Positions 3,488 through 55,243 of a stretch of DNA of 64,000 nucleotides are shown one piece after another. The stretch is from Rhodosorus marinus CCMP1338. Taxonomy: Eukaryota; Plantae; Rhodophyta. A program made the translations under genes and the position numbers. Position 1 is the stretch's first letter, and each line of letters starts with the position of its first letter. The notes under the pieces were generated by a model. It did not search any database, had not been told where the DNA came from, and saw only the letters and a list, made by a program, of their open reading frames with translations. The DNA lies in contig JAMWBK010000010.1 of assembly GCA_029953675.1 (NCBI GenBank), forward strand, positions 124,001 to 188,000. Reading direction: 5' to 3'.

Positions 3488-6408
3488 CTTTAGCAACCAA
3501 AAACGTTCAACAAGCCACAACTGCCACACAACAACTACCACACAACCCTGCCCCCGCCCCCGCCCCCCCCCCCCCAAGAAAAAAAAACTTGCTAGTCCCA
3601 CTCACACGCCTTCCCTCCTTCTCGCAAACGCAGACCTAGTCTCAACAACAGTCGTTTCTCACACCATCGGTATATGGGATACCCTTCCCATGTCTCCTCC
3701 ATTCGTTTCTCAATCTATGTTTATATTCACTAGTGCTTGCTTCTGGCTGAAGGAGGCGTTCTTGTCGAACCGCAAGAAAACGCCAACTGATCTCGAGATG
3801 ACGCCCCATTTTTCCTCACAAAACAAATTATAGTTTTCAAGAAACTATTACATTAAGGTAAATTGGACAATATCAAAAACCCTGAAAATAAATAAAACAA
3901 ACATTACGAAATTGGAAAGTGAGTCTATGCAAGCGGAAGTAGACTCGGATTGTTTAAATAAAATAAAAAACCCGGTTTCTAGAGCTAGCAGAAAATAAAA
4001 AAATCTTCGTCATTTGTCCAAAAACATAAAAATCTAAATTCTGGAGTATACGGATTGGTTGTTGGCGACTGGAAAATCTCGGAAAAAGACGCAACTCGAT
4101 GAGCATTGGATGATTTTTAAATGTATCCAAGTATTAATTGGATAGAAGTAGATATCTATGCATCTCCTTTGCCCAATGAATGAAAATGAAAAGCAAAAAC
4201 CCCATTTGCAACCTTGTCCGTATCAAAGAAGTCAAACAACTAACTAGAACTGCAAAATCCTTTAAGGGGGGGTATGCACATATTTTAATGCGGACTAACA
4301 AAACTTGTATAATCCTCCAATTTATTCAGACAAGAAGAGATTAAAAGCTATATTCGAGTTCCCATAAGGCGTGCGGTACAAAAGCTCAAAGTGTACTCAC
4401 ACTACAACTTTCTACCCCTTGGATAGCCGTTGTCGTGGAGCAGCTCGCTGGTCGTTCGACTGCTCCATAGCAAAAAAATCCCAGTTAGCTTATTTGAGTT
4501 AGTTTTTCAAGTTCGCAGGAAACAGGTGATATTCAATTTTCAGTAGAAATCCATCGTTACGGGTATTTTATCGGCCATTGTCATAAATATCTTTCCTGTA
4601 TTGTGGAAAAAATATCTTGGAAAAATATCTTCTTCGGCACGCCAAAAGTCCGTTGATTTTCCATCATGCCAAGATCCAAAGCTGAGGAACTAATTCGATT
4701 GGTGAGCGGCGGATTGGAGTGTATGAGTGATTCGTGTGCGATCCAGCCTCTCCCCCCCTTCTACCATCCCCTCCACACAGATTCTTATTTCAGTTGCCGT
4801 TTTAGAAGGAAGATCTGTGAAGAAGACGAGCGAGCCCCTTTCTCCCCCTAAAGAAACTATTGCGAATTAGACATGGCCTTGAGCTGCGTTATCACCGTAA
4901 TGCGGAAGATGCGGTTGGGGTGGGGGTCAAAAAGAGGCTTGAAAGAGTTTTTGAGCTGTTTGTGGGTGAGGCGCGGGAGGTCCTTGACCGATTCTTATCT
5001 GGAGGTACCAAGTTGGATCACTTCGCTTTGTGGTGGCTGTTCGTAAGCTTGAGCGGCTAGATGCAAAAATCTTTTTGCAAGCTAACAGCGCAGATTGCAG
5101 TTAGGGGAAGTGGCCATTGACTTCCGCAAAGCTTGCTCTCTGAAACACGCGATTGCGGGGTTAGGCACCTGTTCGATCGGGATCCGGAAGCCACCCCGAA
5201 ATCTGACAACCTTCATTTCTCTCTACCAAAAGTTACCAAACCCACACCAGCAAACCAGCAAAATTCCTCCCCTACTATTCGCCACACGCTCCCTCCGCCT
5301 CTCTCCATCTTCGCTGCACAATCCAGACCCGAATCGCCAGTTGCAATCCTCATACATGAACTAGTCTCAGCAGCAATGTCAGGATCTCTCCCCTGCTCTC
5401 CCTATCAAAGCACACCACCACCACCTTGGCTCCTTGCAGGGAGCAGGGAGGATCGTAGAAGGAAACATCCTCCACAACCTAAAAACAACAAAAGATCTTG
5501 CAGAATTCAGAACACACCCCTCAACCCATCCATTCAAGATGCTCATTACGCAAAGAACGCCTCGCTCACATTCCCCCAAAGCCGATAACAACCATTGAAT
5601 TCCCAAATGTATCGCAATCCATTTACCTCCAATCAATAATACTCGAACGGATTTTATTTATTTTCTGATAATCAAATCCGAGCAATACTTGACACTCCCA
5701 GCCCGTCGTCTGAAGTTCTAAAAATATTTCCGAAATTCTTGGGCGCGTTTCCTAATGGAGAAAACTATGAATTCCTCGTGGTAAGCTCTTGGGTTGGTGG
5801 GGTGGAGTGGGGTTGGGAGGAGCTTGAGCTGGGTGCGAATGACCCTTCCAGAGCGGACTATACTTCTGTTATATAGAATAAGCAATCGATGCTTGAAATT
5901 TCCGGCCGTGGTTTCCGTGAGAAGAAAGCTCTCTCCAAGGACAGTCCCAACCGGATTCTCGAGTTGCGCCGCGGTTCGTCGGCTGTTAAAGACGGCGTTG
6001 TTGCATGTCCTCGAGCAGTGCTGCGATTTCCATTTTGATAAGCAGAAGTACCAAAAGGATAGCTGCATGCTGTAGTGAGCGTTCACGCTCTTTTTGATAG
6101 CTATTCTCTCCGAGACCGCATTGAGCGCGGGTGTTGGATGAAAGAGTCCATGGAGCTAATCTGCTGCTCGACGTTGGATCGTCGAGACCGGTGGATGTGC
6201 GCAAATTGGCGATCGTGCCGTGGTTCGTGAGCCCATGAGAACAGCTCTTCGTACAAAAGCCGGGTTGAACGTAGAAATAGGTGGTCAGCAAGCTGCAAGC
6301 CGAGAGCGATCGGACCTCACTGGCCGTGAAGGTCTGTCGATTGACAGTGGGTGCTCACGCCGAGCGGGACAGAGCTGAGCAAGCTTTCGCAGTATTGAAG
6401 CCTTGGAC

Positions 6409-13159: not shown

Positions 13160-13445
13160 CAGGAAGAAGACGACTTCTGTACACTGAGCGCGTTCAGGAT
13201 TTTTAAGAGGGTTTGGACTTTGGTTCTACCCCCGCAACTACGCTGAAGATGTTATCAAAGCTACTGGCTGAGTTCAGAGACATATAGTCTGGAGCGAAGC
13301 ACTGTTGATGTTTCTAAACATGTCCTTACTGGACGTAGCTAGTTCGTTCGCGAGGAAGACTTCCGTACAGTGAGCATGTTCTGGATTTTAGAAGACTTTG
13401 ACTGCGGGTTTGCCCCTGCCAACTAGGCTGAAGAGGCGTGGACGA
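13160..13445. repeat. Degenerate direct duplication (~95 bp aligned, ~190 bp period) in a decayed coding-like segment
   Basis: 13160 GGAAGAAGACGACTTCTGTACACTGAGCGCGTTCAGGATTTT...CCGCAACTACGCTGAAGA versus ~13352 GGAAGACTTCCGTACAGTGAGCATGTTCTGGATTTT...CTGCCAACTAGGCTGAAGA. Confidence 0.6.
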
Positions 13446-13729
13446 GCTGCAGGCTGAGATAAGAGACAGGTAGTCTGGGCTTGGCTTCGGAACGAAGTAC
13501 TATTGTATTTCTAAAATTGCCCTTTTTGGACACAACTATTTCCTCAAAAGTGTTTGGCAGCATTAGCGTACTATCCCAACTCGTCTCGGCATAGTAGTGA
13601 CGGTCTTGGAGGACAATGAATCGCACGCGGTGCGACGAGATGATGTTTTGGTTTACATCGGGCAATCTAGTTCTTCTCAGCAATATCATTTTCCGTCAAA
13701 GAACTGTTTTCTTTGGACCTGCATCTAAC

Positions 13730-13819
13730 CCGAGGAGGAGCACGCGAACGACAGGGTTGGAACGCAACCGTTCTCCGCCGAGGAGGAGCATGGGAACGAC
13801 AAGGTTGCTGCGCAACCAT
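13730..13819. repeat. 90-bp inverted copy of BIO2 coding sequence 14319-14408
   Basis: The reverse complement of 14319-14408 matches with one mismatch. Confidence 0.97.
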
Positions 13820-14108
13820 CAAGGTGTCGCTCTCGATCCAAGGGGCCCTCGACCGCTTTGTTTAGCAATCTGGTTCATCCCAGGCTGGCATGAGATACCC
13901 AATGCCAAATTGAAAACATTGCTTGGCGCTGCCTGCCAGCGCGCCGGGTTTAATCTTGGCTGCACGAGGATCAGCTCAGCATCAAAGGATCGAAGTTGAT
14001 GTAGGCTTTTATAAATTTTTCTGTTGAGACGCATGCACTCATTTCTTGTCGAGGTCGACAGCAACGCACAAAGCACCCATCAACAGGAAGAACTCTCAAG
14101 AAAAGTTC

Positions 14109-15551
14109 TCATAGCGTTTGAGAGTACAACTTCCGCATGTGTTTGGGGCTCAGCTTCGAGGGGTCGTTGCTCGAAGCGGAGCTCCGGGAATCACGGACCA
14201 ATGCTGACTCTTCTAGCGCGCTCTTTTCTCTGCAAATAGAAAACGTAAAATGGTCGCCCCAGGAGAGCGGCCTACCGAGCTGCAACATTCTGCTTCACGT
14301 ATTCCTCCTCGGCGAAGAATGGTTGCGCAGCAACCTTGTCGTTCCCATGCTCCTCCTCGGCGGAGAACGGTTGCGTTCCAACCCCGTCGTTCGCGTGCTC
14401 CTCCTCGGCAAATACTGGAGGCTTTCCTCGGATCCCCAAGGTTTCGAAAAGCACCTTGTCCTCGTCCATGTCGGAGTTGGGGGTGGTGAGAAGCTTGTCA
14501 CCGGTAAAGATACTATTAGCGCCAGCGAAGAAACAAAGGGCCTGTTCCGAGGGACTCAACGACACCCTTCCAGCGCTCAGGCGAACCATGCTCGCCGGCA
14601 TGATAATTCTGGCGGTAGCGATCATCCTACAGAGATCCCAGACCTTGCCCAACAGGAGTAAGCGCAACTCAGCGTCAGTAACGAGGAAAACAAGGTGGGC
14701 CTGAAGACCTTGACGTAAAATCGTAGAAAATTGAGCAAACTCACAGGTAGAGGTTTCGTGCCTTCCAAGGGAGTACCCTCATTCACAACGAGCGCATTTA
14801 CTGGAACGCTTTCTGGATGGTTCGGAAGAGTCGCAAGGGTGTGGATCATTGAAACTCTGTCTTGATGTGATTCACCAAGACCAATGATTCCGCCACAACA
14901 GACAGAAAGCCCTGCATCTCGAACATTCTGAAGGGTTTGAAGACGGTCGTCATAGTTTCGGGTTGTAATGACCTTGGGGTAAAACTCTCTAGAGGTGTCG
15001 AGGTTGTGGTTGTAGGCAGTCAGACCGGCCTCCTTGAGCATTCTCGCCTGCTCAGCATTGACCAGGCCCAATGTGGCGCATACTTCGAGTCCCATTTCCC
15101 GAACTCCCGTGACCATGTCGAGCACCCTCTGGAACTGCCTTGGGCCCACTTGCGACGCTCCTCGCCAAGCGGCACCCATGCAGAACCTCGTTGAGCCTGC
15201 GTCCTTGGCCTTCTTGGCCTGCGCCAGAACGTCATCGACTTGCATGAGCACCTCGGCCTTCACGCTAGTCTTATACTTGGAGGACTGTGAACAGTATTTG
15301 CAGTCCTCAGGACAACCCCCGGTTTTTATGCTAAGCAAAGTACACTTCTGAACCTCCTGAGGATTAAAGTTTTCCCTATGCGCAGTCGCACCCTGATACA
15401 TCAACTCAAGCAGATTCTGGCTATACACCCTCCGAACTTCATCCAAGGTCCAGTCTCGTCGAACTGGGAAACGTCCCCCGTGAGACCCATTCATGCCATT
15501 CAAGCTACTCATGAATCGCCTTATCGTCCTCTCAACCCTCACAATCCTCAT
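14109..15551 (-). CDS. BIO2: Biotin synthase, mitochondrial, with a repetitive C-terminal extension
   Basis: Radical-SAM motif [13 protein letters not shown], plus YNHNLDTS and PESVPVN. Intron 14644-14744 joins to [16 protein letters not shown]...RLSAGR...[14 protein letters not shown]. Arg-rich presequence. The end is either the TAG at 14272 or, via a 46-nt intron (14230-14275), the TGA at 14109. Confidence 0.95.
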
Positions 15552-16147
15552 TGTCGCCAATTACCACAACTACCGAATCCAATATACGTGAGACGAGCGC
15601 ACCTCTTTCTCCACCCCCGTCCCCAACCCTAATCCCTTCCGTCGCCACTCCCGCACAAGATCCTCCGCCAACACCAACCGATCACTCCCTGCCAACTCAA
15701 CCAAGAAGGCTCGGAATCTCTTCCTCCCTTTGCTTCAACCACTTTTCGTACCAACTAGAACGATTATCAACAATAGATCTTACTAACATCTGCTCACTCT
15801 CAACTCAGTCCAAGCCCAAACCATCCCATCGTTCAGGATATCAAACAACCCTACCAAACGGCCATCCATAGAGCGCTCCAAATACCTCCTCATCATTGTC
15901 ACACCACCCGAAATATCTCAAAGCAGTCAAACCTTCAAGAAAATTAAACAAATATAAATAAAATTTGTTTATTTGGTTGTAGCCCAGAGTAAGTCTAGAT
16001 CTATACACAAAATTCTATTTTGCGCTCGAATGCGGTGAAATATTGAAAAATGGGAACACCTCCTCTGAAGCGGGTGAAGTGAAAAACGAAACCCAACAGA
16101 GTCTACGGATGGTGGTTTGTCCCGTGGTTGGTTTGTATAGGACGGGT

Positions 16148-17056
16148 ACGGACGGTCTGCTTTTCTAACACACGCAGATTGGCGATGGGCATAAAAAGTG
16201 TCTATGACTCATAGTACGAGAACAGGTCGGTCTACCGATCGCGCACCTATCAGAGAGACATTCGGATCCAACTTTCATCGAACAAAAAAGAGTCGGACGG
16301 TCTGCTTTTCTAACAGCAGATTGGCGATGAGCATAAAAAGTGTCTATGACTCATAGTACGAGAACAGGTCGGTCTACCGATCGCGCACCTATCGGAAAGA
16401 CATTCGGATCCAACTTTCATCTAACGAAAAAGAGTCGGACGGTCTGCTTTTCTAACAGCAGACTGGCGATGGGCATAAAAAGTGTCTATGACTCATAGTA
16501 CGAGAACAGGTCGGTCTACCGATCGCGCACCTATCGGAAAGACATTCGGATCCAACTTTCATCTACGAAAAAGAGTCGGACGGTCTGCTTTTCTAACAGC
16601 AGATTGGCGATGGGCATAAAAAGTGTCTATGACTCATAGTACGAGAACAGGTCGGTCTACCGATCGCGCACCTATCGGAAAGACATTCGGATCCAACTTT
16701 CATCTAACGAAACGAGTCGGACGGTCTGCTTTTCTAACAGCAGATTGGCGATGGGCATTAAAGAGTGTCTATGACTCATAGTACGAGAACAGGTCGGTCT
16801 ACCGATCGCGCACCCATCGGAGAGTCATTCGGATCCAACTTTCATCTAACGAAAAAGATTCTACCGATCGCGCCTCTATCCGAGAGACATTCGGATCCAA
16901 CATTCATCTAACGAAAAAGAGTCGGACGGTCTGCTTTTCTAACGGCAGATTGGCGATGGGCATTAAAAGTGTCCATGACTCATAGTACGAGAACATATCT
17001 ATCTACCGATCGCGCCTCTCTATCGGAGAGACATTCGGATCCAACATTCATCTAAC
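16148..17056. repeat. Tandem array of a ~142-bp unit, 6 full copies plus 1 partial
   Basis: GGACGGTCTGC recurs at 16150, 16295, 16437, 16578, 16719 and 16924, with a ~61-nt partial unit near 16861. Units are near-identical and there are no unique spacers. Confidence 0.98.
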
Positions 17057-17489
17057 AAGTCATCTTCTACATTGCATTGAACATTGCAAGCTGACCCTGC
17101 CCCCTTCCGCCCCCCCTCTGCGTCCCCCCCCCCTCGCGGAATTAGGACATAATTTAATCTGAAATACATCAATAAACATCAAGAATCCCATTCTTTTATA
17201 TAATCATATGAAATTTATAGTATCATATGAAGATATCTACAGGTATAGTTAATAAATTTCGAGACTACCATAAAAATATATAAAGTTCTGAGAATATGGT
17301 TCGTGCATAATATTAAAAAATTATTTCCAGCTTTGACGGTCGATCTTGTTTCGTTCAATATTGTCCCTGATGGATCTACAATTAGAAAAATGGAGCGTTT
17401 TTATTGAAACAAAAATTTAGTGCATTTATGGAGGTTGGAGATATGAATCTGGTTCGTTAACGTCGAAGTGATTGAAATAGGTGGCAATC

Positions 17490-18111
17490 GCCTGCACCTA
17501 CTGGCAAGCTACGGTGCGATGAAGGTGGGGGTTTCGCGCTCGGCGTCACACGCGGATAAGCCGTCTTTTCTTCAGGAATCTGCGCCCAGTACTACGTGCA
17601 GGGGGGAATCGCATCGCGAAGGAACAACCCATCCAGTTTGCGCCGTGCGTCAGTAGGAATCACACCACTGAGGATTGTACGGCGGGAGCGCGCACAGTCG
17701 CGGATCTCGTCCTGGAGGATGCCAACGGGCTGCGAAACACGTTTTTGGACCTAAAGCTCCCTTGCTCTCTCGTGGGCCGGTACCTGCCTGCCGCCTCCCC
17801 CGTCGTAGGGGCGCCGCTGCGAAGACTATGCGAAGGCATAAGGAGCTAGTGTACACTGAGCTACTAAGCAACGTTTGCCGTCTGCGCTCGCTTATCGGGT
17901 CGTTCCACTTGTCATCGAGGTCCTTGGATTTGTAGATAGCGCTGGGGGTGCTTGGTTGCCGGGGTGTTACCGCGACCGTCCTGATGCTCTCTCCCGACTG
18001 TATGTTTCTTTGAGTCTGACTCTCCGGCGCTGTAATGCTACCCTAGTTTTGGAAGCGCGCTCTCTACGCCCTCCTAGAGTACCTCATTCGGGGACCTTAG
18101 CCTCCGATTAA
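17490..18111 (+). mobile_element. 5'-truncated, frameshifted CRE/R2-type non-LTR retrotransposon 3' end (RLE endonuclease)
   Basis: Joining frames gives HLLA..., GFRARRHTRIS...LRAGGNRIAKEQP, VADLVL...FLDLK (PD..D), GAAAKTMRRHKELVY (KxxxY), YRVVPLVIEVLG and SLSLTLRRCNA, the ordered RLE motifs of CRE-clade elements. Confidence 0.75.
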
Positions 18112-18128
18112 AATGATCATGAATATAA

Positions 18129-19260
18129 AAGGTTGGAGCACCCCTCGGTAGGGAAGGAAGAGGGAGGGAGCGCCCAAGGAGCGGTGGATCTTCACACCAA
18201 ATACGGAACGCAGCTTACTCTCAACAAGACAGATTACTAAAAGGCCCGTTTACGTAGCATGTAAACACTCTTGATCCTTCTTTACTGACTTCCAAAGATG
18301 TACGATTCGTTGGGCCAAGGTCAATCCTTTTTCCATTAATTTATTCGCGCTGACCACGCGCCGCCTCTTAGGGAACATGTCGCGGGTGAGCGTAAGCTGT
18401 GTTCCGTGTTTGGTGTGAAGATCCACCGCTCCTTGGGCGTCTAACTTCCTCTTTCTTCCATCACCGAGGGTTATTCAAACCTTCGGGATTGCTGTCATGG
18501 TGCTGAAAGCGTCCCTTTCGCGAACGCTTGATCGGTCGCACCAGCAAGAAAAGAAAACCAAAAGAGAGGTTCAAGGGAGGAGCGGGAAAGCCTTTCGAAA
18601 ACCTGGCAGCAACTCAAGCGAGCAAGAAGATGCATAGGTTAAAGTGCTACTATAAGCGTCCGAGTGCTTTCTCCCGGCCTCATCTGCCGTCGGTAGACTC
18701 TTGCCTAACCGGTGTCCGCGCTTTCCGCGGTCGTCGTATCATAGCTTTCTCGAAGTTCGTTCCATTGATACTTCGGGTTGTCTCCTGCGATTTTGGTCAG
18801 CGGGGGCACTTCAAGAACGAATGTCTCGAACCAGAAGAGCAGCCGACGAAGAAGTTCCAGGTCAGTATCGTGAAGGACACAGAAAACACAACATACTTCT
18901 TCTTAGCCAGTGTTGGTGTTCTTGCCAGCTTCCGGCATAATCTTCAAGACTTCTGCAGAGCATTAACCATGAGATTTTGGGGTCTCTCCATGTGTTGAGG
19001 AGGAAATCCTTAAATTCTGGTCAATGCTCGAGAGTTTTTCTCATTGTTCTCAGTCTTTCTGGATCCGTCCGAGCCTGGACGTAGATTTCTCGTATCTCGG
19101 CGAACTCCTTGTCAAGCCAGGATATCCATGTGCGAGCGCTTTCTCCCGGCCTCATCTTCCGTCGGTAGACTCTTGCCCAAACGATGTCCGCGCTCTCTGC
19201 GGTAGTCGTATCATACCTTTCTCGGAGTTCGTTTCATTGATCTTTCGGGTTGTTTCGTTT
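18129..19260 (-). mobile_element. Decayed, internally rearranged Ty1/copia gag-pol remnant
   Basis: Minus 19260-18900: NELRERYD...RKMRPGESARTWI..LDKEFAEI (UBN2/gag_2-like, with stops). Minus 18510-18250: ITLGDG...QGAVDLHTKHGTQLTL...VVSANKLMEKG (copia protease-region beta-barrel). The Zn-knuckle region lies on the plus strand at 18520-18895. Confidence 0.8.
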
Positions 19261-19469
19261 TGTTACTGAAGACAAGAGAAGGGGGAAAACGGAAACCAGC
19301 GGTGCTCGGCTGAAAGGGATCAGCGAGCTATAGGGACCTGAAGTTACCGTAAGCCTTACTGGGCAGCTGCCTACTGCAGCGCAACACTAATTCTACTACT
19401 ATCTAAGGGAAAAAGTTACGGTAACCCCGCTACCGGGGTCTCATGCTACGTTCAAAGAAACAGCAGGAA

Positions 19470-19930
19470 CCAATGGATTCGCCAACTGGTCCACTCGCAG
19501 AGCGCCTACGCAATCTCTGCGTTACCTTGCCGAAGCTTCCGGTTCATCTGAGCCCGCACGTCGCTCAGCTCGGCACTCCGGTGCAATAAATGCTTGCAAC
19601 TATCCCGCAGGAATTCCTGTGCATTATGGTCCTGTTCGCCCAAAACTCTCGATCGCGATCGGGATGAACTTGTCGTCTGGTTTCTCAACCGACATTGCTT
19701 CTTAGTAATGTGGCAGCTTCCAGCTCTCAGTAGCCTTAGCAGGATGTTGAAGATGTCGATCTCCAATGCAAACTCGAGGCAGAGATATTGCGATGGGCCC
19801 TCTGCGAGTAGACCAGTTGGCGAATCCATATGGGAGCGAGAACGGGTACGCGGCGAAGGTAGCTGAGAACTGGAAACTGGCACACTACAAAGAAGCGATG
19901 TCGGTTGAGAAACCAGACGACAAGTTGAGA
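19470..19930. mobile_element. Second CRE-type RLE remnant, present as opposed overlapping fragments
   Basis: Minus 19737-19506: KLPHY*EAM...FIPIAIESFGR...AQEFL...KLRQGNAEIA*. Plus 19766-19926: GRDIA...VDQLANPY...GYAAKVAENWKLAHYKEAM. Confidence 0.72.
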
Positions 19931-20637
19931 CCATATAGCCAAAAAACAAAACCTTTCTTGTAACCTTTCCCAAACATCGGCACCACCCTGACTCCATAAA
20001 ACAAATGCGTTCATTAGGCACTCAAATCGTTCGCACCCACCATCCACCTTGAACGGTCCTCATTCACCCAACCCTTTTGTATAGTGTTTATCCTCTATGC
20101 TACCAATATTATCTTCTACTACTACGGTAAGCTTTCTACCCCCTCGGCTAAATGCCGAAATGAATACCTTTCACCCTCCCCCCTCCTTTTCAATGCTTAA
20201 AAAACAACCAAAAAACTCCAAAATAGGAAACACGCACAGCCTTCAATAATATAATCCAACATATCATCAGTCCAAACATAGAATTTGGAGATTTACAAAA
20301 ATTCTAGGTATTCGGTTATTATATTTAAACGAAACATAAAAGTGAGTACTGCATAATTCAATTATTTTCTGACCACATTGTTGAGTCAATGAATCAATCA
20401 AATAGATCTTATTGACTGATAACTCTGATTATTCGCAAAATTCAAGAGCATGAGATCGGGATGGGGGGCGGGCAACGGTCGACGAGAAAAACGGTCACTG
20501 GGACATTTCTGTCCCAACTGCGGGTTTGGGCTTCCCCGGCACGCGCACCTCCAGTCGGGCGAATTTCGATTATTTTAAGAAGGGTTTTCGATTTGCTCGC
20601 AAGGGCGCCTAGACTTGGCGACATCGCAAAAAAAAAA

Positions 20638-20689
20638 GCAGGATGTTGAAGATGTCGATCTCCAATGGCAACTCGAGGCAGAGATATTG
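20638..20689 (+). repeat. 52-bp direct copy of 19739-19790, preceded by A10
   Basis: GCAGGATGTTGAAGATGTCGATCTCCAATG..AACTCGAGGCAGAGATATTG, 50/52 identical. Confidence 0.95.
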
Positions 20690-21746
20690 TCATGACGTGG
20701 TGTGTGTGAGTTTTTCCACGACCACCGGATTTTTTGCCGCGGTATTCTTATGAGCTCAAATTTTCACGCTCCGTTGCCGCGCTTGAAAGACGGCTGAGCT
20801 TAAATTCAAGCGATTTCGATTTGTTTACGTACGGAGTTTTCAGAAGGGCTCTACGAGCAAATTGGGGAATGTGAATTCTTGAATCTGCTCATTAGTTGAA
20901 AAAGATCAATGCAGCAAACAACAGGTCCTTGGGGACTGTCCTGCCATCGCAGCAATCTCACAGACCTAGGCTGAAGAACCAAAACCGGTTTTTGGCGTAC
21001 TACAAAAGTCAAATACCGCGGACTTGGTTCTGCCGGCACACATCTTCCAAAGGCTTTCGAGAAATACAACTCCCAGCCATTTTTGAAACCGGGCCAGGTG
21101 AGTTGCTCTTCGAATTCTCTTTCGACCCCAAGTCCCACCAGCTCCGCTTGTTCTCGAGGATGTCGAGTTGTGCGCGACAGCGAGGGAGCAAACACAATCG
21201 TTCTCCGTGGTCGCTTGTCCTGGGCTCGTCGACCCACAGACAAGCGATCTCAAAATGCAGTTGGACAGTCAGCGCAGTTTCCAATCTAAATCTGCATGCA
21301 GGAGTCTTCTTCGAGTTGGGAGATTTGATAAAATTTAATCTTGTGCTCGCTTGCTCTTGGCCCGAATATAGAACTACGAAGAATCCTTACGGTGCAAGAC
21401 ACAAAGAGGTTTAGAACTCATATCTGTACACAACTTCATTTCCTCCAGATAACAGTTGACGAAGGCAAGAAGGAATAAGAGGGACGGAAAACAACTATCC
21501 TTCCTGAACAAAAAAAAGCCTTCTGCGGCAGCATACAAAAAAAAAGAGAAACGAAACGCGGGGGTATATCTCTCCAACCGTCACGCATACCAAGCAAAAA
21601 TCTGCTCAACAGGGTATGAGCGAAGGAAGACGAAGGAAAGACATCCTGCTTACAGGATCAACCTAAAAGATATGTACGCACTGCAAACCAAGAGTCTAGT
21701 CCGCGGCTTCGCGATGCAAAGAACAACTCGAGGCCGTATGGTCAAC

Positions 21747-24468: not shown

Positions 24469-24558
24469 CTATGCCCGACCCCCTAACGCAGGACATCCTA
24501 TGCCCGACCCCCTAACGCAGGACATCCTATGCCCGACCCCCTAACGCAGGACATCCTA
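24469..24558. repeat. 29-bp minisatellite x3
   Basis: CTATGCCCGACCCCCTAACGCAGGACATC is repeated perfectly at 24469, 24498 and 24527. Confidence 0.97.
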
Positions 24559-24866: not shown

Positions 24867-25561
24867 TTATCGTCAACTATTATGGGGGTTAAGCAAGGGC
24901 TGATATCCAAGCGTAGATAAAGCAGTCTATGCAGAAACTAACCTGGTCCTCATATGGCCTCGGAAATTGCCAACAATCAAAAGCGAACAATCATCTTCCG
25001 AAAAAAAAATTGCAAAAAACACCTCATTGACTTCAAAGTAGTGATAAGAGCCAATACCAACTCATCAATTTTCCCTTGAAAGATATTTTGTAAACTGCTA
25101 GTGCAACGGGGGGGTAAGTCAGCGGCATTCTCTCCTTAATCAATTATACTATTGCATAGATTATCAAAGTACGCCGAATTCCCCCTATGCAAAAAGCTTT
25201 TAAATATTCATCGGCGAATACATGGGTGCTGTGTCGGTAACCGTTAAAAAACTTCTGGACCTCTCATAAATTATTCAAATTCATCAATTACTGATAATCC
25301 CATTTCCAGATTCAACTTTTAAAAAAGGAAACGTTATATACGTTGGCGCGTATTCAGTCGATTCAGGGCACCGGATAAGACTGCAAAGCGCAACTCCTTT
25401 GAAGTCAAAGGATTTTGTTTGCAATTAGCTTTTCGGAAGTTGATGTGCTTTTGATTGCTGGCAATTTGCGACGCAATATCAGAACCCTTTCTGGCAAACC
25501 TGCTTTTTACCTGCGCTTGGATATCGGCCCTTATCGTAACCCCTATACTAGTTGACGATAA
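24867..25561. mobile_element. Fold-back/MITE-like element with long degenerate terminal inverted repeats (~170-180 bp)
   Basis: Left arm TTATCGTCAACTA..GGGGTTA..AAGGGCTGATATCCAAGCG..AAATTGCCAACAATCAAAAGC..CTTCCGAAAA..TTGACTTCAAAG (24867-~25045) matches the reverse complement of ~25393-25561. Non-coding; no clear TSD. Confidence 0.75.
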
Positions 25562-53315: not shown

Positions 53316-55243
53316 TATCCTCCTACAAATTCATCCATCCAGATCTCAAACATCCCGTGTCCTTCCCAAAGTTCCAAACACGGCAGCCGTAAAATAGAAA
53401 TTCAAACAATACAGAAACTAGTCTTCCTCCCCACCCATTCCTCCAAACCCCTTCCCAGTCCCTCCCTCAACAAGGTCAACGCCCTCCACATCCCCACCCT
53501 CTCCCCCCTTCTCCCCATCCGCTCTATGTATACTATAAAATCCATTGCGTCAGATGTCACCGGCATTTTGACATGAGACTCTTCAAAAAGGCTCATCTCG
53601 TACGAAACCACAAAATCCCCATGTGTGAGTCACACCTCACTAAATGACGTACAACTACGACCCGTTCAAGGACGATCGATCCTCATTAGTACAAAATATC
53701 CCAATTAGTAACCAACTGTTTCTCATGACAATACCCCCAAGAATATCTAAAAACGATTCCTTTTCGTAGAAATAAGTATCAAAATATCATCTTTCAGAAA
53801 TATGGTTGTTTCTAACCCTCCTGATTTCGAGCTGACAAGAACTCTACTCTTCAACTTATTTGTTTCAGTTTGTACAGAAAAGTATTGGTATTGAGCAATG
53901 TCAACACAGCGTATTTTGCGTCCATTTTGCTCCCATTTTGCGCGCTCTGGCTGTCAGTTTAGAGAGGACCTCGGATTCTTACGAGGGAGGGGTGGGGAGA
54001 GGGGGGACGCGCTTGATGTTTGTCAGCGATACCTTTAGTAACCGTTCTGCTACTCTTTTTCCACTGTATGCTTCTTTGAGTCTGGCTCTCTAAGTCTGCC
54101 TTAGTTCTGGAAGCATCTCTCGCTGTCGACCTTCCTACCGGACCTCATTCGGGGACCTTCTGCCTCCAATTCAACCGATCGATCAACATCATATTTTGGA
54201 AAAAACAAACTATTTCAAAAAAAGGGTGTTTCGGGACATTTGGTTTTCGGTGGACGTTCCGAACGATAACCCGCAAAGCAGTTTCTTTATTTATTTTCCG
54301 AAGAATATGTTTGAGCGATGGACAAGGGGCAGGTGTAGACGCGTGGTGGTGATTAATTGGTCTTATTGACTTGCATTGAACAATGAAGGACATCATTTTA
54401 GTGTGTTAGTACAAGAGATAGTACTAGGGGACCGGGACTTGAGTGTGATTTTGATTGCCAAAAAAAAAAGTGGCTCTTTTCTATTGGATGGCAGATGGCC
54501 ATCCTATGAGTGGGAACCGCGGGACGCGGTGTGCCAGGTGTGGATTCTATTGTAAGGGTATTGTCAGATCTCATCTGATCCGTTAGAACATCAGGACTGG
54601 GACGATCAAGAGGAGCAAGCTCTCCAGAAACTCTGTGGGAGCTGGCGATGAACGTGCACGATATCGATCGTCTCGGGCTCGATGTACGAGATTTCCCTGA
54701 TCGATGCGCGTACCTGCCACAGCGAGGGTTCGACCACTAATTTCTCCCTGTGCGACGAAACTTGGATGCAAGCGATCCTCGCAAGGACGGCACGGCCGCG
54801 TGTCGGAACCCACTGCGCGAGCCTTGAAGGGCCTGGCCTCCACATCTTAAATGAAACATTATCGCAGTTTATTCTCAACCGTGATTCTGAGCCAGCGGTA
54901 CAACGGCCGTCAGAGTACAGTGAATAATTTGTCTACTCCGACCCTTTCTCAAGTTTGAAAAATTTGCGAACCAAGCTGACCCGCTTCAGTCTGGAACAAG
55001 TCATTAGTTTGAAAAAAAATGAAGAACATGCCACACAACTACCTTCAGCGGACCGTTGCGAGAGCTCCTGACATTATTCAGTCGGTGGAGCCCTCCTACA
55101 AAAAAACAGAATGCTCAGCTTAACTCTGCACGAGCTTCTTGGGGCGTCTACCTTCACCCTTAGATGGCGCACCTAATGGTAAATGACGACCCGAACGTGT
55201 GAAAACATGAACACAATTTTGAACCTCGCTTGGGAATAGCTAG

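Follow-up and report, generated by a model that had tools for sequence, protein, structure and literature searches.

Genes and repeats at the locus

The window, by which we mean the whole 64-kb stretch of DNA analysed, carries on its minus strand the biotin synthase gene BIO2 (14272–15560), which has two exons separated by one short intron (roughly 14668–14700) and encodes a protein with 90% amino-acid identity to the Rhodosorus marinus BIO2. The acidic C-terminal extension of this protein is encoded by a 48-nt (16-aa) tandem repeat (14279–14422, minus strand), with three units in the window and two in two other Rhodosorus lineages; the third unit is a lineage-specific tandem duplication. Between BIO2 and its convergent neighbouring gene lies an intergenic segment (P1 copy, 13730–13819) that is the reverse complement, at 99% identity, of BIO2 coding sequence located 500 nt away in the last exon (P1 template, 14319–14408, minus strand). 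The template spans units of the tandem repeat, and the copy includes the additional (third) unit, while a small palindrome, GGTTGCGCAGCAACC (14321–14335, 6-bp stem), adjoins the start of the template. A preliminary description of this DNA had suggested that copying spills over onto BIO2, and this is correct insofar as the copy was templated by coding sequence. The gene itself is not disrupted, because the copy sits ~180–270 nt past the end of the spliced sister-strain transcript (L002), and probably past the poly(A) site.

Beyond BIO2 is a repeat-rich intergenic island, the left part of which is a 142-bp satellite (16149–17058; ~5–6.5 units, ~96% identity). Further along is a dispersed element (17975–18137, plus strand) with a 73%-identical paralogue at 54041–54200, and its homology stops where the left arm of an inverted repeat, P2, starts (18129–18223, an inverted copy of 18387–18483). 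This arm caps the truncated end of a degraded Ty1/Copia-type Pol beta-barrel domain (Pol_BBD) remnant (18253–18543, minus strand, one in-frame stop), which matched PF22936 at an E-value of 4.8e-5 and 24 bits (cutoff 27) over 70 of 81 profile positions. Both the right arm of P2 and its loop lie within the remnant, and in a snap-back configuration position 18223 pairs with 18387 across a loop of 163 nt. An ORF with a degenerate CCHC-like motif holds the first copy of a direct repeat, P3 (18658–18784, plus strand), the second copy of which (19130–19256, plus strand) lies 472 nt downstream at 88% identity; since their 15 nucleotide differences cause 10 amino-acid changes, P3 is free of coding constraint.

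Pfam searches of nine ORFs (seven in the 17.6–20.7 kb island and two beside the P1 copy) and of all six frames of 17101–20800 returned the weak Pol_BBD match only, with no matches to reverse transcriptase (RT), integrase or gag in the six-frame translations of 17101–20800. No homologues were found for the ORF at 18528–18998, and HMMER, searching 1.84 billion representatives with the 74-aa remnant, returned one spurious repeat protein. A metagenome scan with a gag-like plus BBD-like peptide yielded no relatives, and a second, with a DNA pattern of two blocks taken from the dispersed element, gave no matches; self-comparison of the window revealed no LTR-size direct repeats bounding the island, and a tRNA scan gave nothing. 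The retroelement identity proposed earlier for this sequence thus finds weak support in one near-threshold Copia-type Pol_BBD remnant, and the other ORFs and frames showed no family or homologue. As a reference, the long-read Rhodosorus marinus nuclear assembly comprises 15% repeats and many NUMTs, and minicircles have tandem repeats in their constant regions (PMC10250338), which makes a NUMT origin of the island conceivable.

Local repeat pairs and their clustering

Repeat finding and blastn self-comparison, followed by pairwise alignments, recovered all six repeat pairs listed in the preliminary description at their coordinates and in the orientations it had counted, namely four inverted (P1, P2, P4 and P5) and two direct (P3 and P6). 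The arms are identical at 89/90 positions in P1, at 86% over 97 nt in P2 (with a 31-nt exact core), at 88% over 127 nt in P3, at 89% in P4 (19473–19518/19783–19829), at 86% over 74 nt in P5 (19667–19740/19853–19926), and at 93–96% in P6 (19738–19790(95)/20637–20689(94)). A further inverted pair, P7 (arms 24867–25042/25393–25561, span 24867–25561, 77% identity), lies outside the range described earlier. In the six listed pairs, the copied tracts measure 47–127 nt (47–97 nt for the inverted ones) and lie 0.1–0.9 kb from their templates, and P1 and P2 both have a snap-back geometry with the loop-proximal ends paired. Identities had initially been given as ~80–99%; the upper end holds, and the lower end does not, as the ~80% pair (13730/14279) was ruled out as a separate old event: it results from the 48-nt tandem repeat matching itself out of register.

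With local pairs defined as scoring at least 50 bits and having the partner within 1 kb, the shuffled control that the preliminary description had called for, run here on the 64-kb window, gave 0 pairs in 20 dinucleotide-preserving shuffles versus 8 non-tandem pairs in the real sequence. Six of these eight fall within 7 kb, or 11% of the window (binomial 4e-5), and when events rather than pairs are counted, 4/7 are found in the same 11% (4e-3).

Templated copies at P1 and at 19738–19926

Among P1–P7, P1 is the only pair for which an orthologous empty site is known. The sister-lineage contig L001 represents this site without the P1 copy and is colinear with the window on both flanks, its alignment covering 15603 to 13828 and picking up again at 13725, such that 27 nt of L001 stand opposite 102 nt of the window, and ~20 nt opposite ~94 nt (the 90-nt copy plus 3–4 extra bases) at P1 proper. 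The comparison shows P1 as an apparent lineage-specific deletion plus inverted templated insertion, in which ~20 nt would have been replaced by ~94 nt in a single event. Evolutionarily, the insertion would be derived rather than ancestral, because the copy holds the window-specific third repeat unit; we infer the same polarity from the arms, which differ at 1/90 positions (1%) versus 20% divergence between the flanking non-coding DNA of the L001 and window lineages. This polarity has one outgroup, L001, itself 20% diverged in the non-coding flanks, with L002 stopping ~180 nt short of the site.

The second site is a patch chain (19738–19926) that comprises, in this order, a direct copy of 20637–20689 (C copy, 19738–19790), the reverse complement of segment A (19473–19518; A', 19783–19829), 23 nt of no traced origin (19830–19852), and the reverse complement of segment B (19667–19740; B', 19853–19926), the end of segment B being also the start of the chain. 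Segment C (20637–20689, plus strand) probably supplied the direct patch: the C homology begins and ends at patch borders (the ends of B and A') in the mosaic, and its limits match nothing at the 20637–20689 locus. A check of junction microhomology, as advised in the preliminary description, identified AGC (B/C) and GCAGAGAT (C/A') at the switch points of the mosaic, each common to the adjoining patches, and when templates were sought for the segments between patches, the 23-nt filler among them, nothing rose above shuffled controls. This arrangement indicates that the chain probably arose by serial template switching. Taken together, the orthologue comparison at P1 and the chain with its junction microhomology bear out the earlier proposal of short-range templated copying, as opposed to chance similarity.

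Could such features derive from the assembly instead, the inverted P1 copy or the mosaic having been created by chimeric reads or mis-joins? P1 is short and 99% identical, which would suit that origin, yet five of the six pairs, as well as P7, are 4–23% diverged and not of a kind that artefacts produce, P1 is embedded in colinear orthologous sequence on both flanks, and long reads underlie the Rhodosorus marinus genome assembly (PMC10250338). We regard an artefact as extremely unlikely.

Ages of the copies

Arm divergences distinguish at least three ages (23%, ~12% and 1%), with P2–P6 homogeneous (chi-square p 0.69), P1 younger (p 7e-4) and P7 older (p 1e-3) than that group. Because at least three ages can be told apart, the copying process recurred, as had been claimed; the claim does not extend to a spread of ages within the island, where the divergences of P2–P6 are statistically indistinguishable and these pairs may therefore go back to a very small number of events, not to many. 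The number of events in the 64 kb is a handful, possibly as few as five.

Transposable-element architecture as an alternative

The arms of P2–P7 might alternatively be MITE or foldback-element terminal inverted repeats, overlapping fragments from multiple copies of a single Copia-like family that inserted in both orientations, or products of reverse-transcriptase template switching before integration. A Copia-type Pol_BBD remnant is present on the minus strand with the CCHC-like motif on the plus strand ~300 nt away, so that fragments of opposite orientation abut, P7 resembles a 695-bp foldback with 175-nt arms, and the divergences of P2–P6 are alike, all of which would agree with such an architecture. 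We nonetheless hold it to be rather unlikely, as neither P2 nor P7 has target-site duplications, the arms have no further copies in the 64-kb window, the right arm and loop of P2 form a colinear coding remnant with no inserted element, the coincident borders and common microhomology of the mosaic patches are unexpected for nested insertions, and P1 involves no TE at all. A MITE reading of P2 and P7 was ruled out, there being no target-site duplication and the P2 arm being colinear with the coding remnant. P2–P6 could nevertheless be due in part to TE-internal structure, nested fragments or reverse-transcriptase template switching.

Hairpin-RNA function as an alternative

Functionally, the preliminary description had interpreted the copies as a dedicated system, with the hairpins forming an siRNA cluster that acts as a TE trap, and a corresponding hypothesis is that they constitute an endogenous small-RNA locus whose BIO2-derived hairpin would act back on BIO2 itself. 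If transcribed, the inverted pairs would fold into long stems (z −8.6 to −22.8), and read-through RNA may exist, since L001 spans the entire intergenic region between BIO2 and its neighbour, with the proviso that this transcriptome-derived assembly may merge convergent transcripts. Some mesophilic red algae are, moreover, reported to have small RNAs (PMC12026948). However, the arms have decayed without bias towards pair-preserving changes (transitions/transversions 6/6 in P2, 6/4 in P5 and 9/19 in P7, with no consistent G:U bias); there is no evidence that selection has maintained pairing. Further, no Rfam match was obtained at the gathering threshold or at E-values up to 1, a single TE-like fragment was identified in place of an assortment of TE families, the spliced L002 transcript ends before the P1 copy is reached, the events are few for 64 kb, and a literature search found no Rhodosorus data on small RNAs or on Dicer/AGO. 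We therefore find a small-RNA locus very unlikely, and the missing pair-preserving bias and Rfam match argue against the dedicated system, siRNA cluster and TE trap as originally put forward; a functional system is unsupported, and the copies look like neutral scars.

piRNA and siRNA clusters that act as TE traps extend over tens of kilobases. The locus here is similar in being a repeat-rich intergenic island with TE-derived fragments in both orientations, but differs in its size (~5 kb), its single recognisable TE fragment and its lack of TE-family diversity. Young plant MIRNA or hairpin-RNA genes are said to originate from inverted duplication of their target genes (reportedly Allen et al. 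2004), whereby an inverted gene copy and the gene's own sequence make a long near-perfect fold-back. P1 has this form, although one of its arms is the BIO2 gene itself, in cis. We give scarcely any credence to the related idea that P1 is a newborn cis hairpin, in which read-through from BIO2 or its convergent neighbour would produce a perfect 90-bp duplex and, by dicing, siRNAs tuning BIO2, the older island hairpins having been born in the same way and being now in decay; if true, this would be the first documented birth of a gene-derived hairpin RNA via template switching in a red alga.

Probable short-range template switching and related repair pathways

We posit that the region is probably neutrally decaying intergenic DNA beside BIO2, in a nuclear genome of the Rhodosorus type, that bears the scars of generic short-range template switching. 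The substrate would be the 142-bp satellite, the Copia-like remnant and further sequence of no assigned origin, in which the 3' end left at a break, or at a fork that has stalled, would anneal, by microhomology of a few bases, to the same molecule 0.1–0.9 kb away and copy 50–130 nt, giving an inverted copy where it folds onto its own strand and a direct copy where the pairing is with the other side. The copying end may switch again before the final rejoining, which would usually entail the loss of some original bases. P2 and P3 would have arisen the same way, and the hairpin-forming potential would be a by-product, not a function. Enzymatically, a replicative template switch, Pol-theta/SD-MMEJ snap-back or MMBIR could each be responsible.

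The pattern at P1 appears to fit published four-point template-switch and fold-back repair. In the four-point model (Loytynoja & Goldman 2017, PMC5453318; Monttinen & Loytynoja 2022, PMC8794818; Monttinen et al. 2023, PMC10710096), replacement in one step by a nearby reverse complement creates a perfect hairpin arm and is seen against a close relative. P1 matches this point by point, being the reverse complement of a nearby stretch at 89/90 positions (86–89% in P2, P4 and P5) and, by comparison with L001 as the outgroup, a single-event replacement. In contrast to the model, the tracts here are longer (47–97 nt, inverted), the templates are up to 0.5 kb away and there is one outgroup, and the direct patches (P3 and P6) and the multi-switch chain exceed a single switch-and-return.

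Deletion plus templated insertion at one site, found at both P1 and 19738–19926, also characterizes SD-MMEJ or polymerase-theta templated insertions of the snap-back and trans types (PMC2943611, PMC5728401, PMC4912351), as well as the fold-back inversions that form at double-strand breaks in yeast (PMC11724301), and the likeness extends to the use of cis (inverted) and trans (direct) templates, to repeated copying rounds joined at short microhomologies in the patch chain and to a small hairpin-forming sequence at the priming site. However, experimentally induced fold-back or Pol-theta inserts are mostly about 5–34 nt, with templates no more than tens of bases from the break (PMC11724301), versus 47–127 nt from 0.1–0.9 kb here. 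No POLQ gene lies within the 64-kb window, and a literature search on Rhodosorus POLQ found nothing. Serial microhomology switches in MMBIR/FoSTeS produce chains of direct and inverted patches like that at 19738–19926. The described cases usually involve kilobase-to-megabase segments, relative to which this site would be a 190-nt micro-scale version. MMBIR/FoSTeS complex rearrangements have been named as outside the four-point model (PMC5453318).

What is new here is a red-algal instance of a known mutational process, and the feature is real: it provides a red-algal example of a polarised 90-nt inverted templated insertion, plus a multi-switch patch chain. Template-switch processes known from primates, yeast, flies and plants would then also shape a small (~31 Mb) rhodophyte genome. 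Template-switch mutations arise at random and can supply raw material for hairpin RNAs (PMC5453318, PMC8794818, PMC10710096). Such events turn coding or TE sequence at once into long, perfect hairpins, the proposed starting point of new hairpin-RNA genes; they are also a known cause of alignment and variant-calling errors.

Separately, the sister lineage L002 has, in the BIO2 3'UTR, a small hairpin extension of the classic template-switch type, which likewise matches the four-point model point by point.

Genomic setting and clustering of the repeat pairs

The local repeat pairs analyzed here are a real feature of this genome, and a known mutational process accounts for them. The window comes from the nuclear genome of a red alga closely related to Rhodosorus marinus, a species with a published long-read nuclear assembly (strain CCMP1338; 31 Mb, 15% repeats, unusually numerous NUMTs; PMC10250338). 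Exon 1 of the biotin synthase gene BIO2 corresponds to the ORF at 14622-15560 (minus strand), which shares 90% identity with an R. marinus BIO2 from transcriptome data (P0001) and 88% with another Rhodosorus-like sequence (P0002). The remainder of the window is dense in genes, of the ordinary housekeeping type.

All six pairs of the preliminary description (P1-P6) were recovered with coordinates matching to a few bases and in the claimed orientations, four inverted (P1, P2, P4 and P5) and two direct (P3 and P6). The claimed identity range of ~80-99% held at its upper end (P1, 89/90 positions) but not at its lower end, where the ~80% match is an off-register alignment inside a 48-nt tandem repeat, which rules it out as a separate event. 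Local pairs of ≥50 bits within 1 kb numbered eight in the real window outside tandem arrays, versus zero in 20 dinucleotide-preserving shuffles of the window, and a 7-kb interval holds six of the eight (p 4e-5) or, counted as events, four of seven (p 4e-3). An exact-run scan confined long local runs to 13.7-14.4 kb, 18.1-20.7 kb and 24.9-25.6 kb, with just chance 12-13-mers in the rest of the window. Outside the 7-kb interval, a further inverted pair, P7 (24867-25042 and 25393-25561, 77% identity), represents an earlier event of this type or, alternatively, a foldback element; its 695-bp fold-back (24867-25561) has 175-nt arms and no visible target-site duplication.

A recent inverted copy templated by BIO2

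P1 (13730-13819 and 14319-14408) could be compared with a sister lineage through L001, a 2257-nt transcriptome-derived contig that carries BIO2 and 965 nt of its 3′ flank. L001 is colinear with the window from 15603 to 13828 and then again from 13725 on, with 27 nt at the P1 site versus 102 nt in the window; in a finer alignment, ~20 nt of L001 gives way in the window to the 90-nt reverse complement of 14319-14408 and 3-4 additional bases. The template lies in an acidic, lineage-specific C-terminal extension of Rhodosorus BIO2, composed of 16-aa tandem repeats (QPF.AEEE..., 14279-14422, minus strand), with three units in the window, two in both P0001 and P0002, and none in other red algae. The insertion appears derived and recent, because its arms differ at 1/90 positions versus 20% divergence between the window and L001 lineages in the surrounding non-coding flank, and because the copy contains the third, window-specific repeat unit. 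P1 matches exactly the outcome of a four-point template switch, in which fragment 1→4 is replaced by the reverse complement of 2→3 (PMC5453318), and equally fits fold-back (snap-back) priming at a break, in which geometry the loop-proximal arm ends pair (13819 with 14319); the template start adjoins a palindrome with a 6-bp stem. The ~2 kb that can be compared with L001 contain just one further large indel, a 45-48-nt tandem duplication in the same BIO2 repeat, so that the 48-nt repeat, involved in both, is a local hotspot of copying errors.

The suggestion that copying had spilled over onto BIO2 stands insofar as BIO2 sequence served as the template of P1, but the coding sequence was not touched: the copy sits between BIO2 and a convergent neighbor, the last exon of which stops near 13215-13246. 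L002, a spliced transcript from a sister strain, ends ~273 nt past the BIO2 stop (equivalent to ~14000 in the window), 180-270 nt before the P1 copy. L001 itself keeps the BIO2 intron and continues across the entire intergenic sequence into the convergent neighbor, a pattern that suggests read-through or overlap of convergent transcripts, or else carry-over of genomic DNA.

Independent support for template switching comes from the same BIO2 3′UTR. A conserved stem (CTCTCAA...TTGAGAG; ~14085-14135 of the window, minus strand, and ~1349-1386 of L002) is a weak 8-bp stem that, in L002, is flanked on both sides by clustered changes that make it a perfect 15-bp hairpin, with a folding energy of −27.9 kcal/mol versus −13 and −8 for the two remaining lineages. 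This hairpin is a textbook case of a small template-switch mutation and bears the classic signature that Monttinen and Loytynoja reported (PMC8794818).

Composition of the 16.1-20.7 kb island

Upstream of BIO2, the island comprises a 142-bp satellite, two AT-rich blocks, and ~2.6 kb without a conserved ORF. The satellite (16149-17058; ~5-6.5 units, ~96% identity, with a 62-nt sub-repeat) lies immediately upstream of BIO2 and, by analogy with the tandem repeats in constant regions of R. marinus mitochondrial minicircles, in a genome where NUMTs are abundant (PMC10250338), could be a NUMT; parts of the island may share that origin. Pfam searches of seven island ORFs, two ORFs beside the P1 copy and all six frames returned no family but one weak match, to PF22936 (Pol_BBD), the beta-barrel domain of Copia-type Pol polyproteins, at 18543-18253 on the minus strand with one internal stop (scanned alone, E 4.8e-5 and 24 bits, cutoff 27 bits). 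The opposite strand carries a degenerate CCHC-like motif, and homologue searches with island sequences found no relatives. Given this single weak match and the lack of homologues, the retroelement identity previously assigned is probable for this one fragment only, and not for the rest of the island. A dispersed 160-nt element occurs at 17975-18137 and 54041-54200 (73% identity, invariant 17-mer CCTCATTCGGGGACCTT), with no match in Rfam.

Fold-back and patch-chain structures

P2 (18129-18223 and 18387-18483) has its right arm and loop inside the Pol_BBD remnant, whose reading frame stops ~30 nt short of the left arm. The left arm repeats, in inverted orientation, sequence located 163 nt further inward, and on its outer side it is followed by the dispersed element, whose homology to 54041-54200 ends at the arm. 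A truncated TE end that folded back, copied 97 nt of its own sequence and was then joined to other DNA would be expected to leave this geometry.

The segment at 19738-19926 is a mosaic that involves P4, P5 and P6. After B (19667-19740) come a direct copy of C (19738-19790, matching 20637-20689; P6), A′ (19783-19829, the reverse complement of 19473-19518; P4), a 23-nt filler whose source was not found, and B′ (19853-19926, the reverse complement of B; P5); a template search for the remaining mosaic segments found none. The C homology has one border at the end of B and the other at the start of A′, and the sequences common to both templates at the switch points are AGC and the exact 8-mer GCAGAGAT (11/13 bases). 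Such coincident borders would be natural if 19738-19926 were a chain of patches from serial template switching, whereas taking the 20.6-kb locus as the copy leaves them unexplained.

Relative ages of the events

Arms differ at 1/90 positions in P1, 14/97 in P2, 15/127 in P3 (18658-18784 and 19130-19256), 5/47 in P4, 10/74 in P5, 4/58 in P6 and 41/179 in P7. Divergence is homogeneous across P2-P6 (chi-square p 0.69, pooled 11.9%), with P1 younger (p 7e-4) and P7 older (p 1e-3); scaled to the 20% divergence of the flank between lineages, the age of the island events is ~0.6 that of the split, and the age of P1 ~0.06. Thus, the proposal of repeated events over time is borne out to the extent of at least three episodes (P1, P2-P6 and P7), but the four island events are not separable in age, and could represent a single period or even very few events.

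Hairpin RNA and the proposed TE trap

Functionally, each inverted pair would form a long stem if transcribed (z −8.6 to −22.8), as repeats make such stems automatically. Transversions are as many as transitions among the arm differences and wobble bias is not consistent, which speaks against a selected hairpin locus; the absence of a target-site duplication speaks against a MITE. The 15 nucleotide differences between the P3 copies cause 10 amino-acid changes. Rfam gave no match, and we found no literature on small RNAs, Dicer/AGO or POLQ for Rhodosorus. Nothing points to selection for hairpin RNA, and the notion of a dedicated system or TE trap is unsupported, with arms lacking pairing bias and no Rfam match.

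Relation to known mutational processes

The closest kinds of event, all with the defining outcome observed here, include template-switch mutations (PMC5453318, PMC8794818, PMC10710096), synthesis-dependent MMEJ with Pol-theta snap-back and trans-templated insertions (PMC2943611, PMC5728401, PMC4912351), yeast fold-back inversions (PMC11724301), and MMBIR/FoSTeS at micro scale. Compared with typical experimental inserts, the events here are longer (47-127 nt) and their templates farther off (0.1-0.9 kb). What is new is an instance of the known template-switch process in a red alga.

Elsewhere in the window, at 24469-24558, an intergenic 29-nt sequence (CTATGCCCGACCCCCTAACGCAGGACATC) occurs as three perfect tandem copies. 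Homopolymer runs of G or of C, 10-16 nt long, occur at 3563, 17124, 23713, 24657, 25861, 31457 and 57073, several of them bordering repeat-rich intergenic islands; such tracts, which can stall replication, could seed the breaks.
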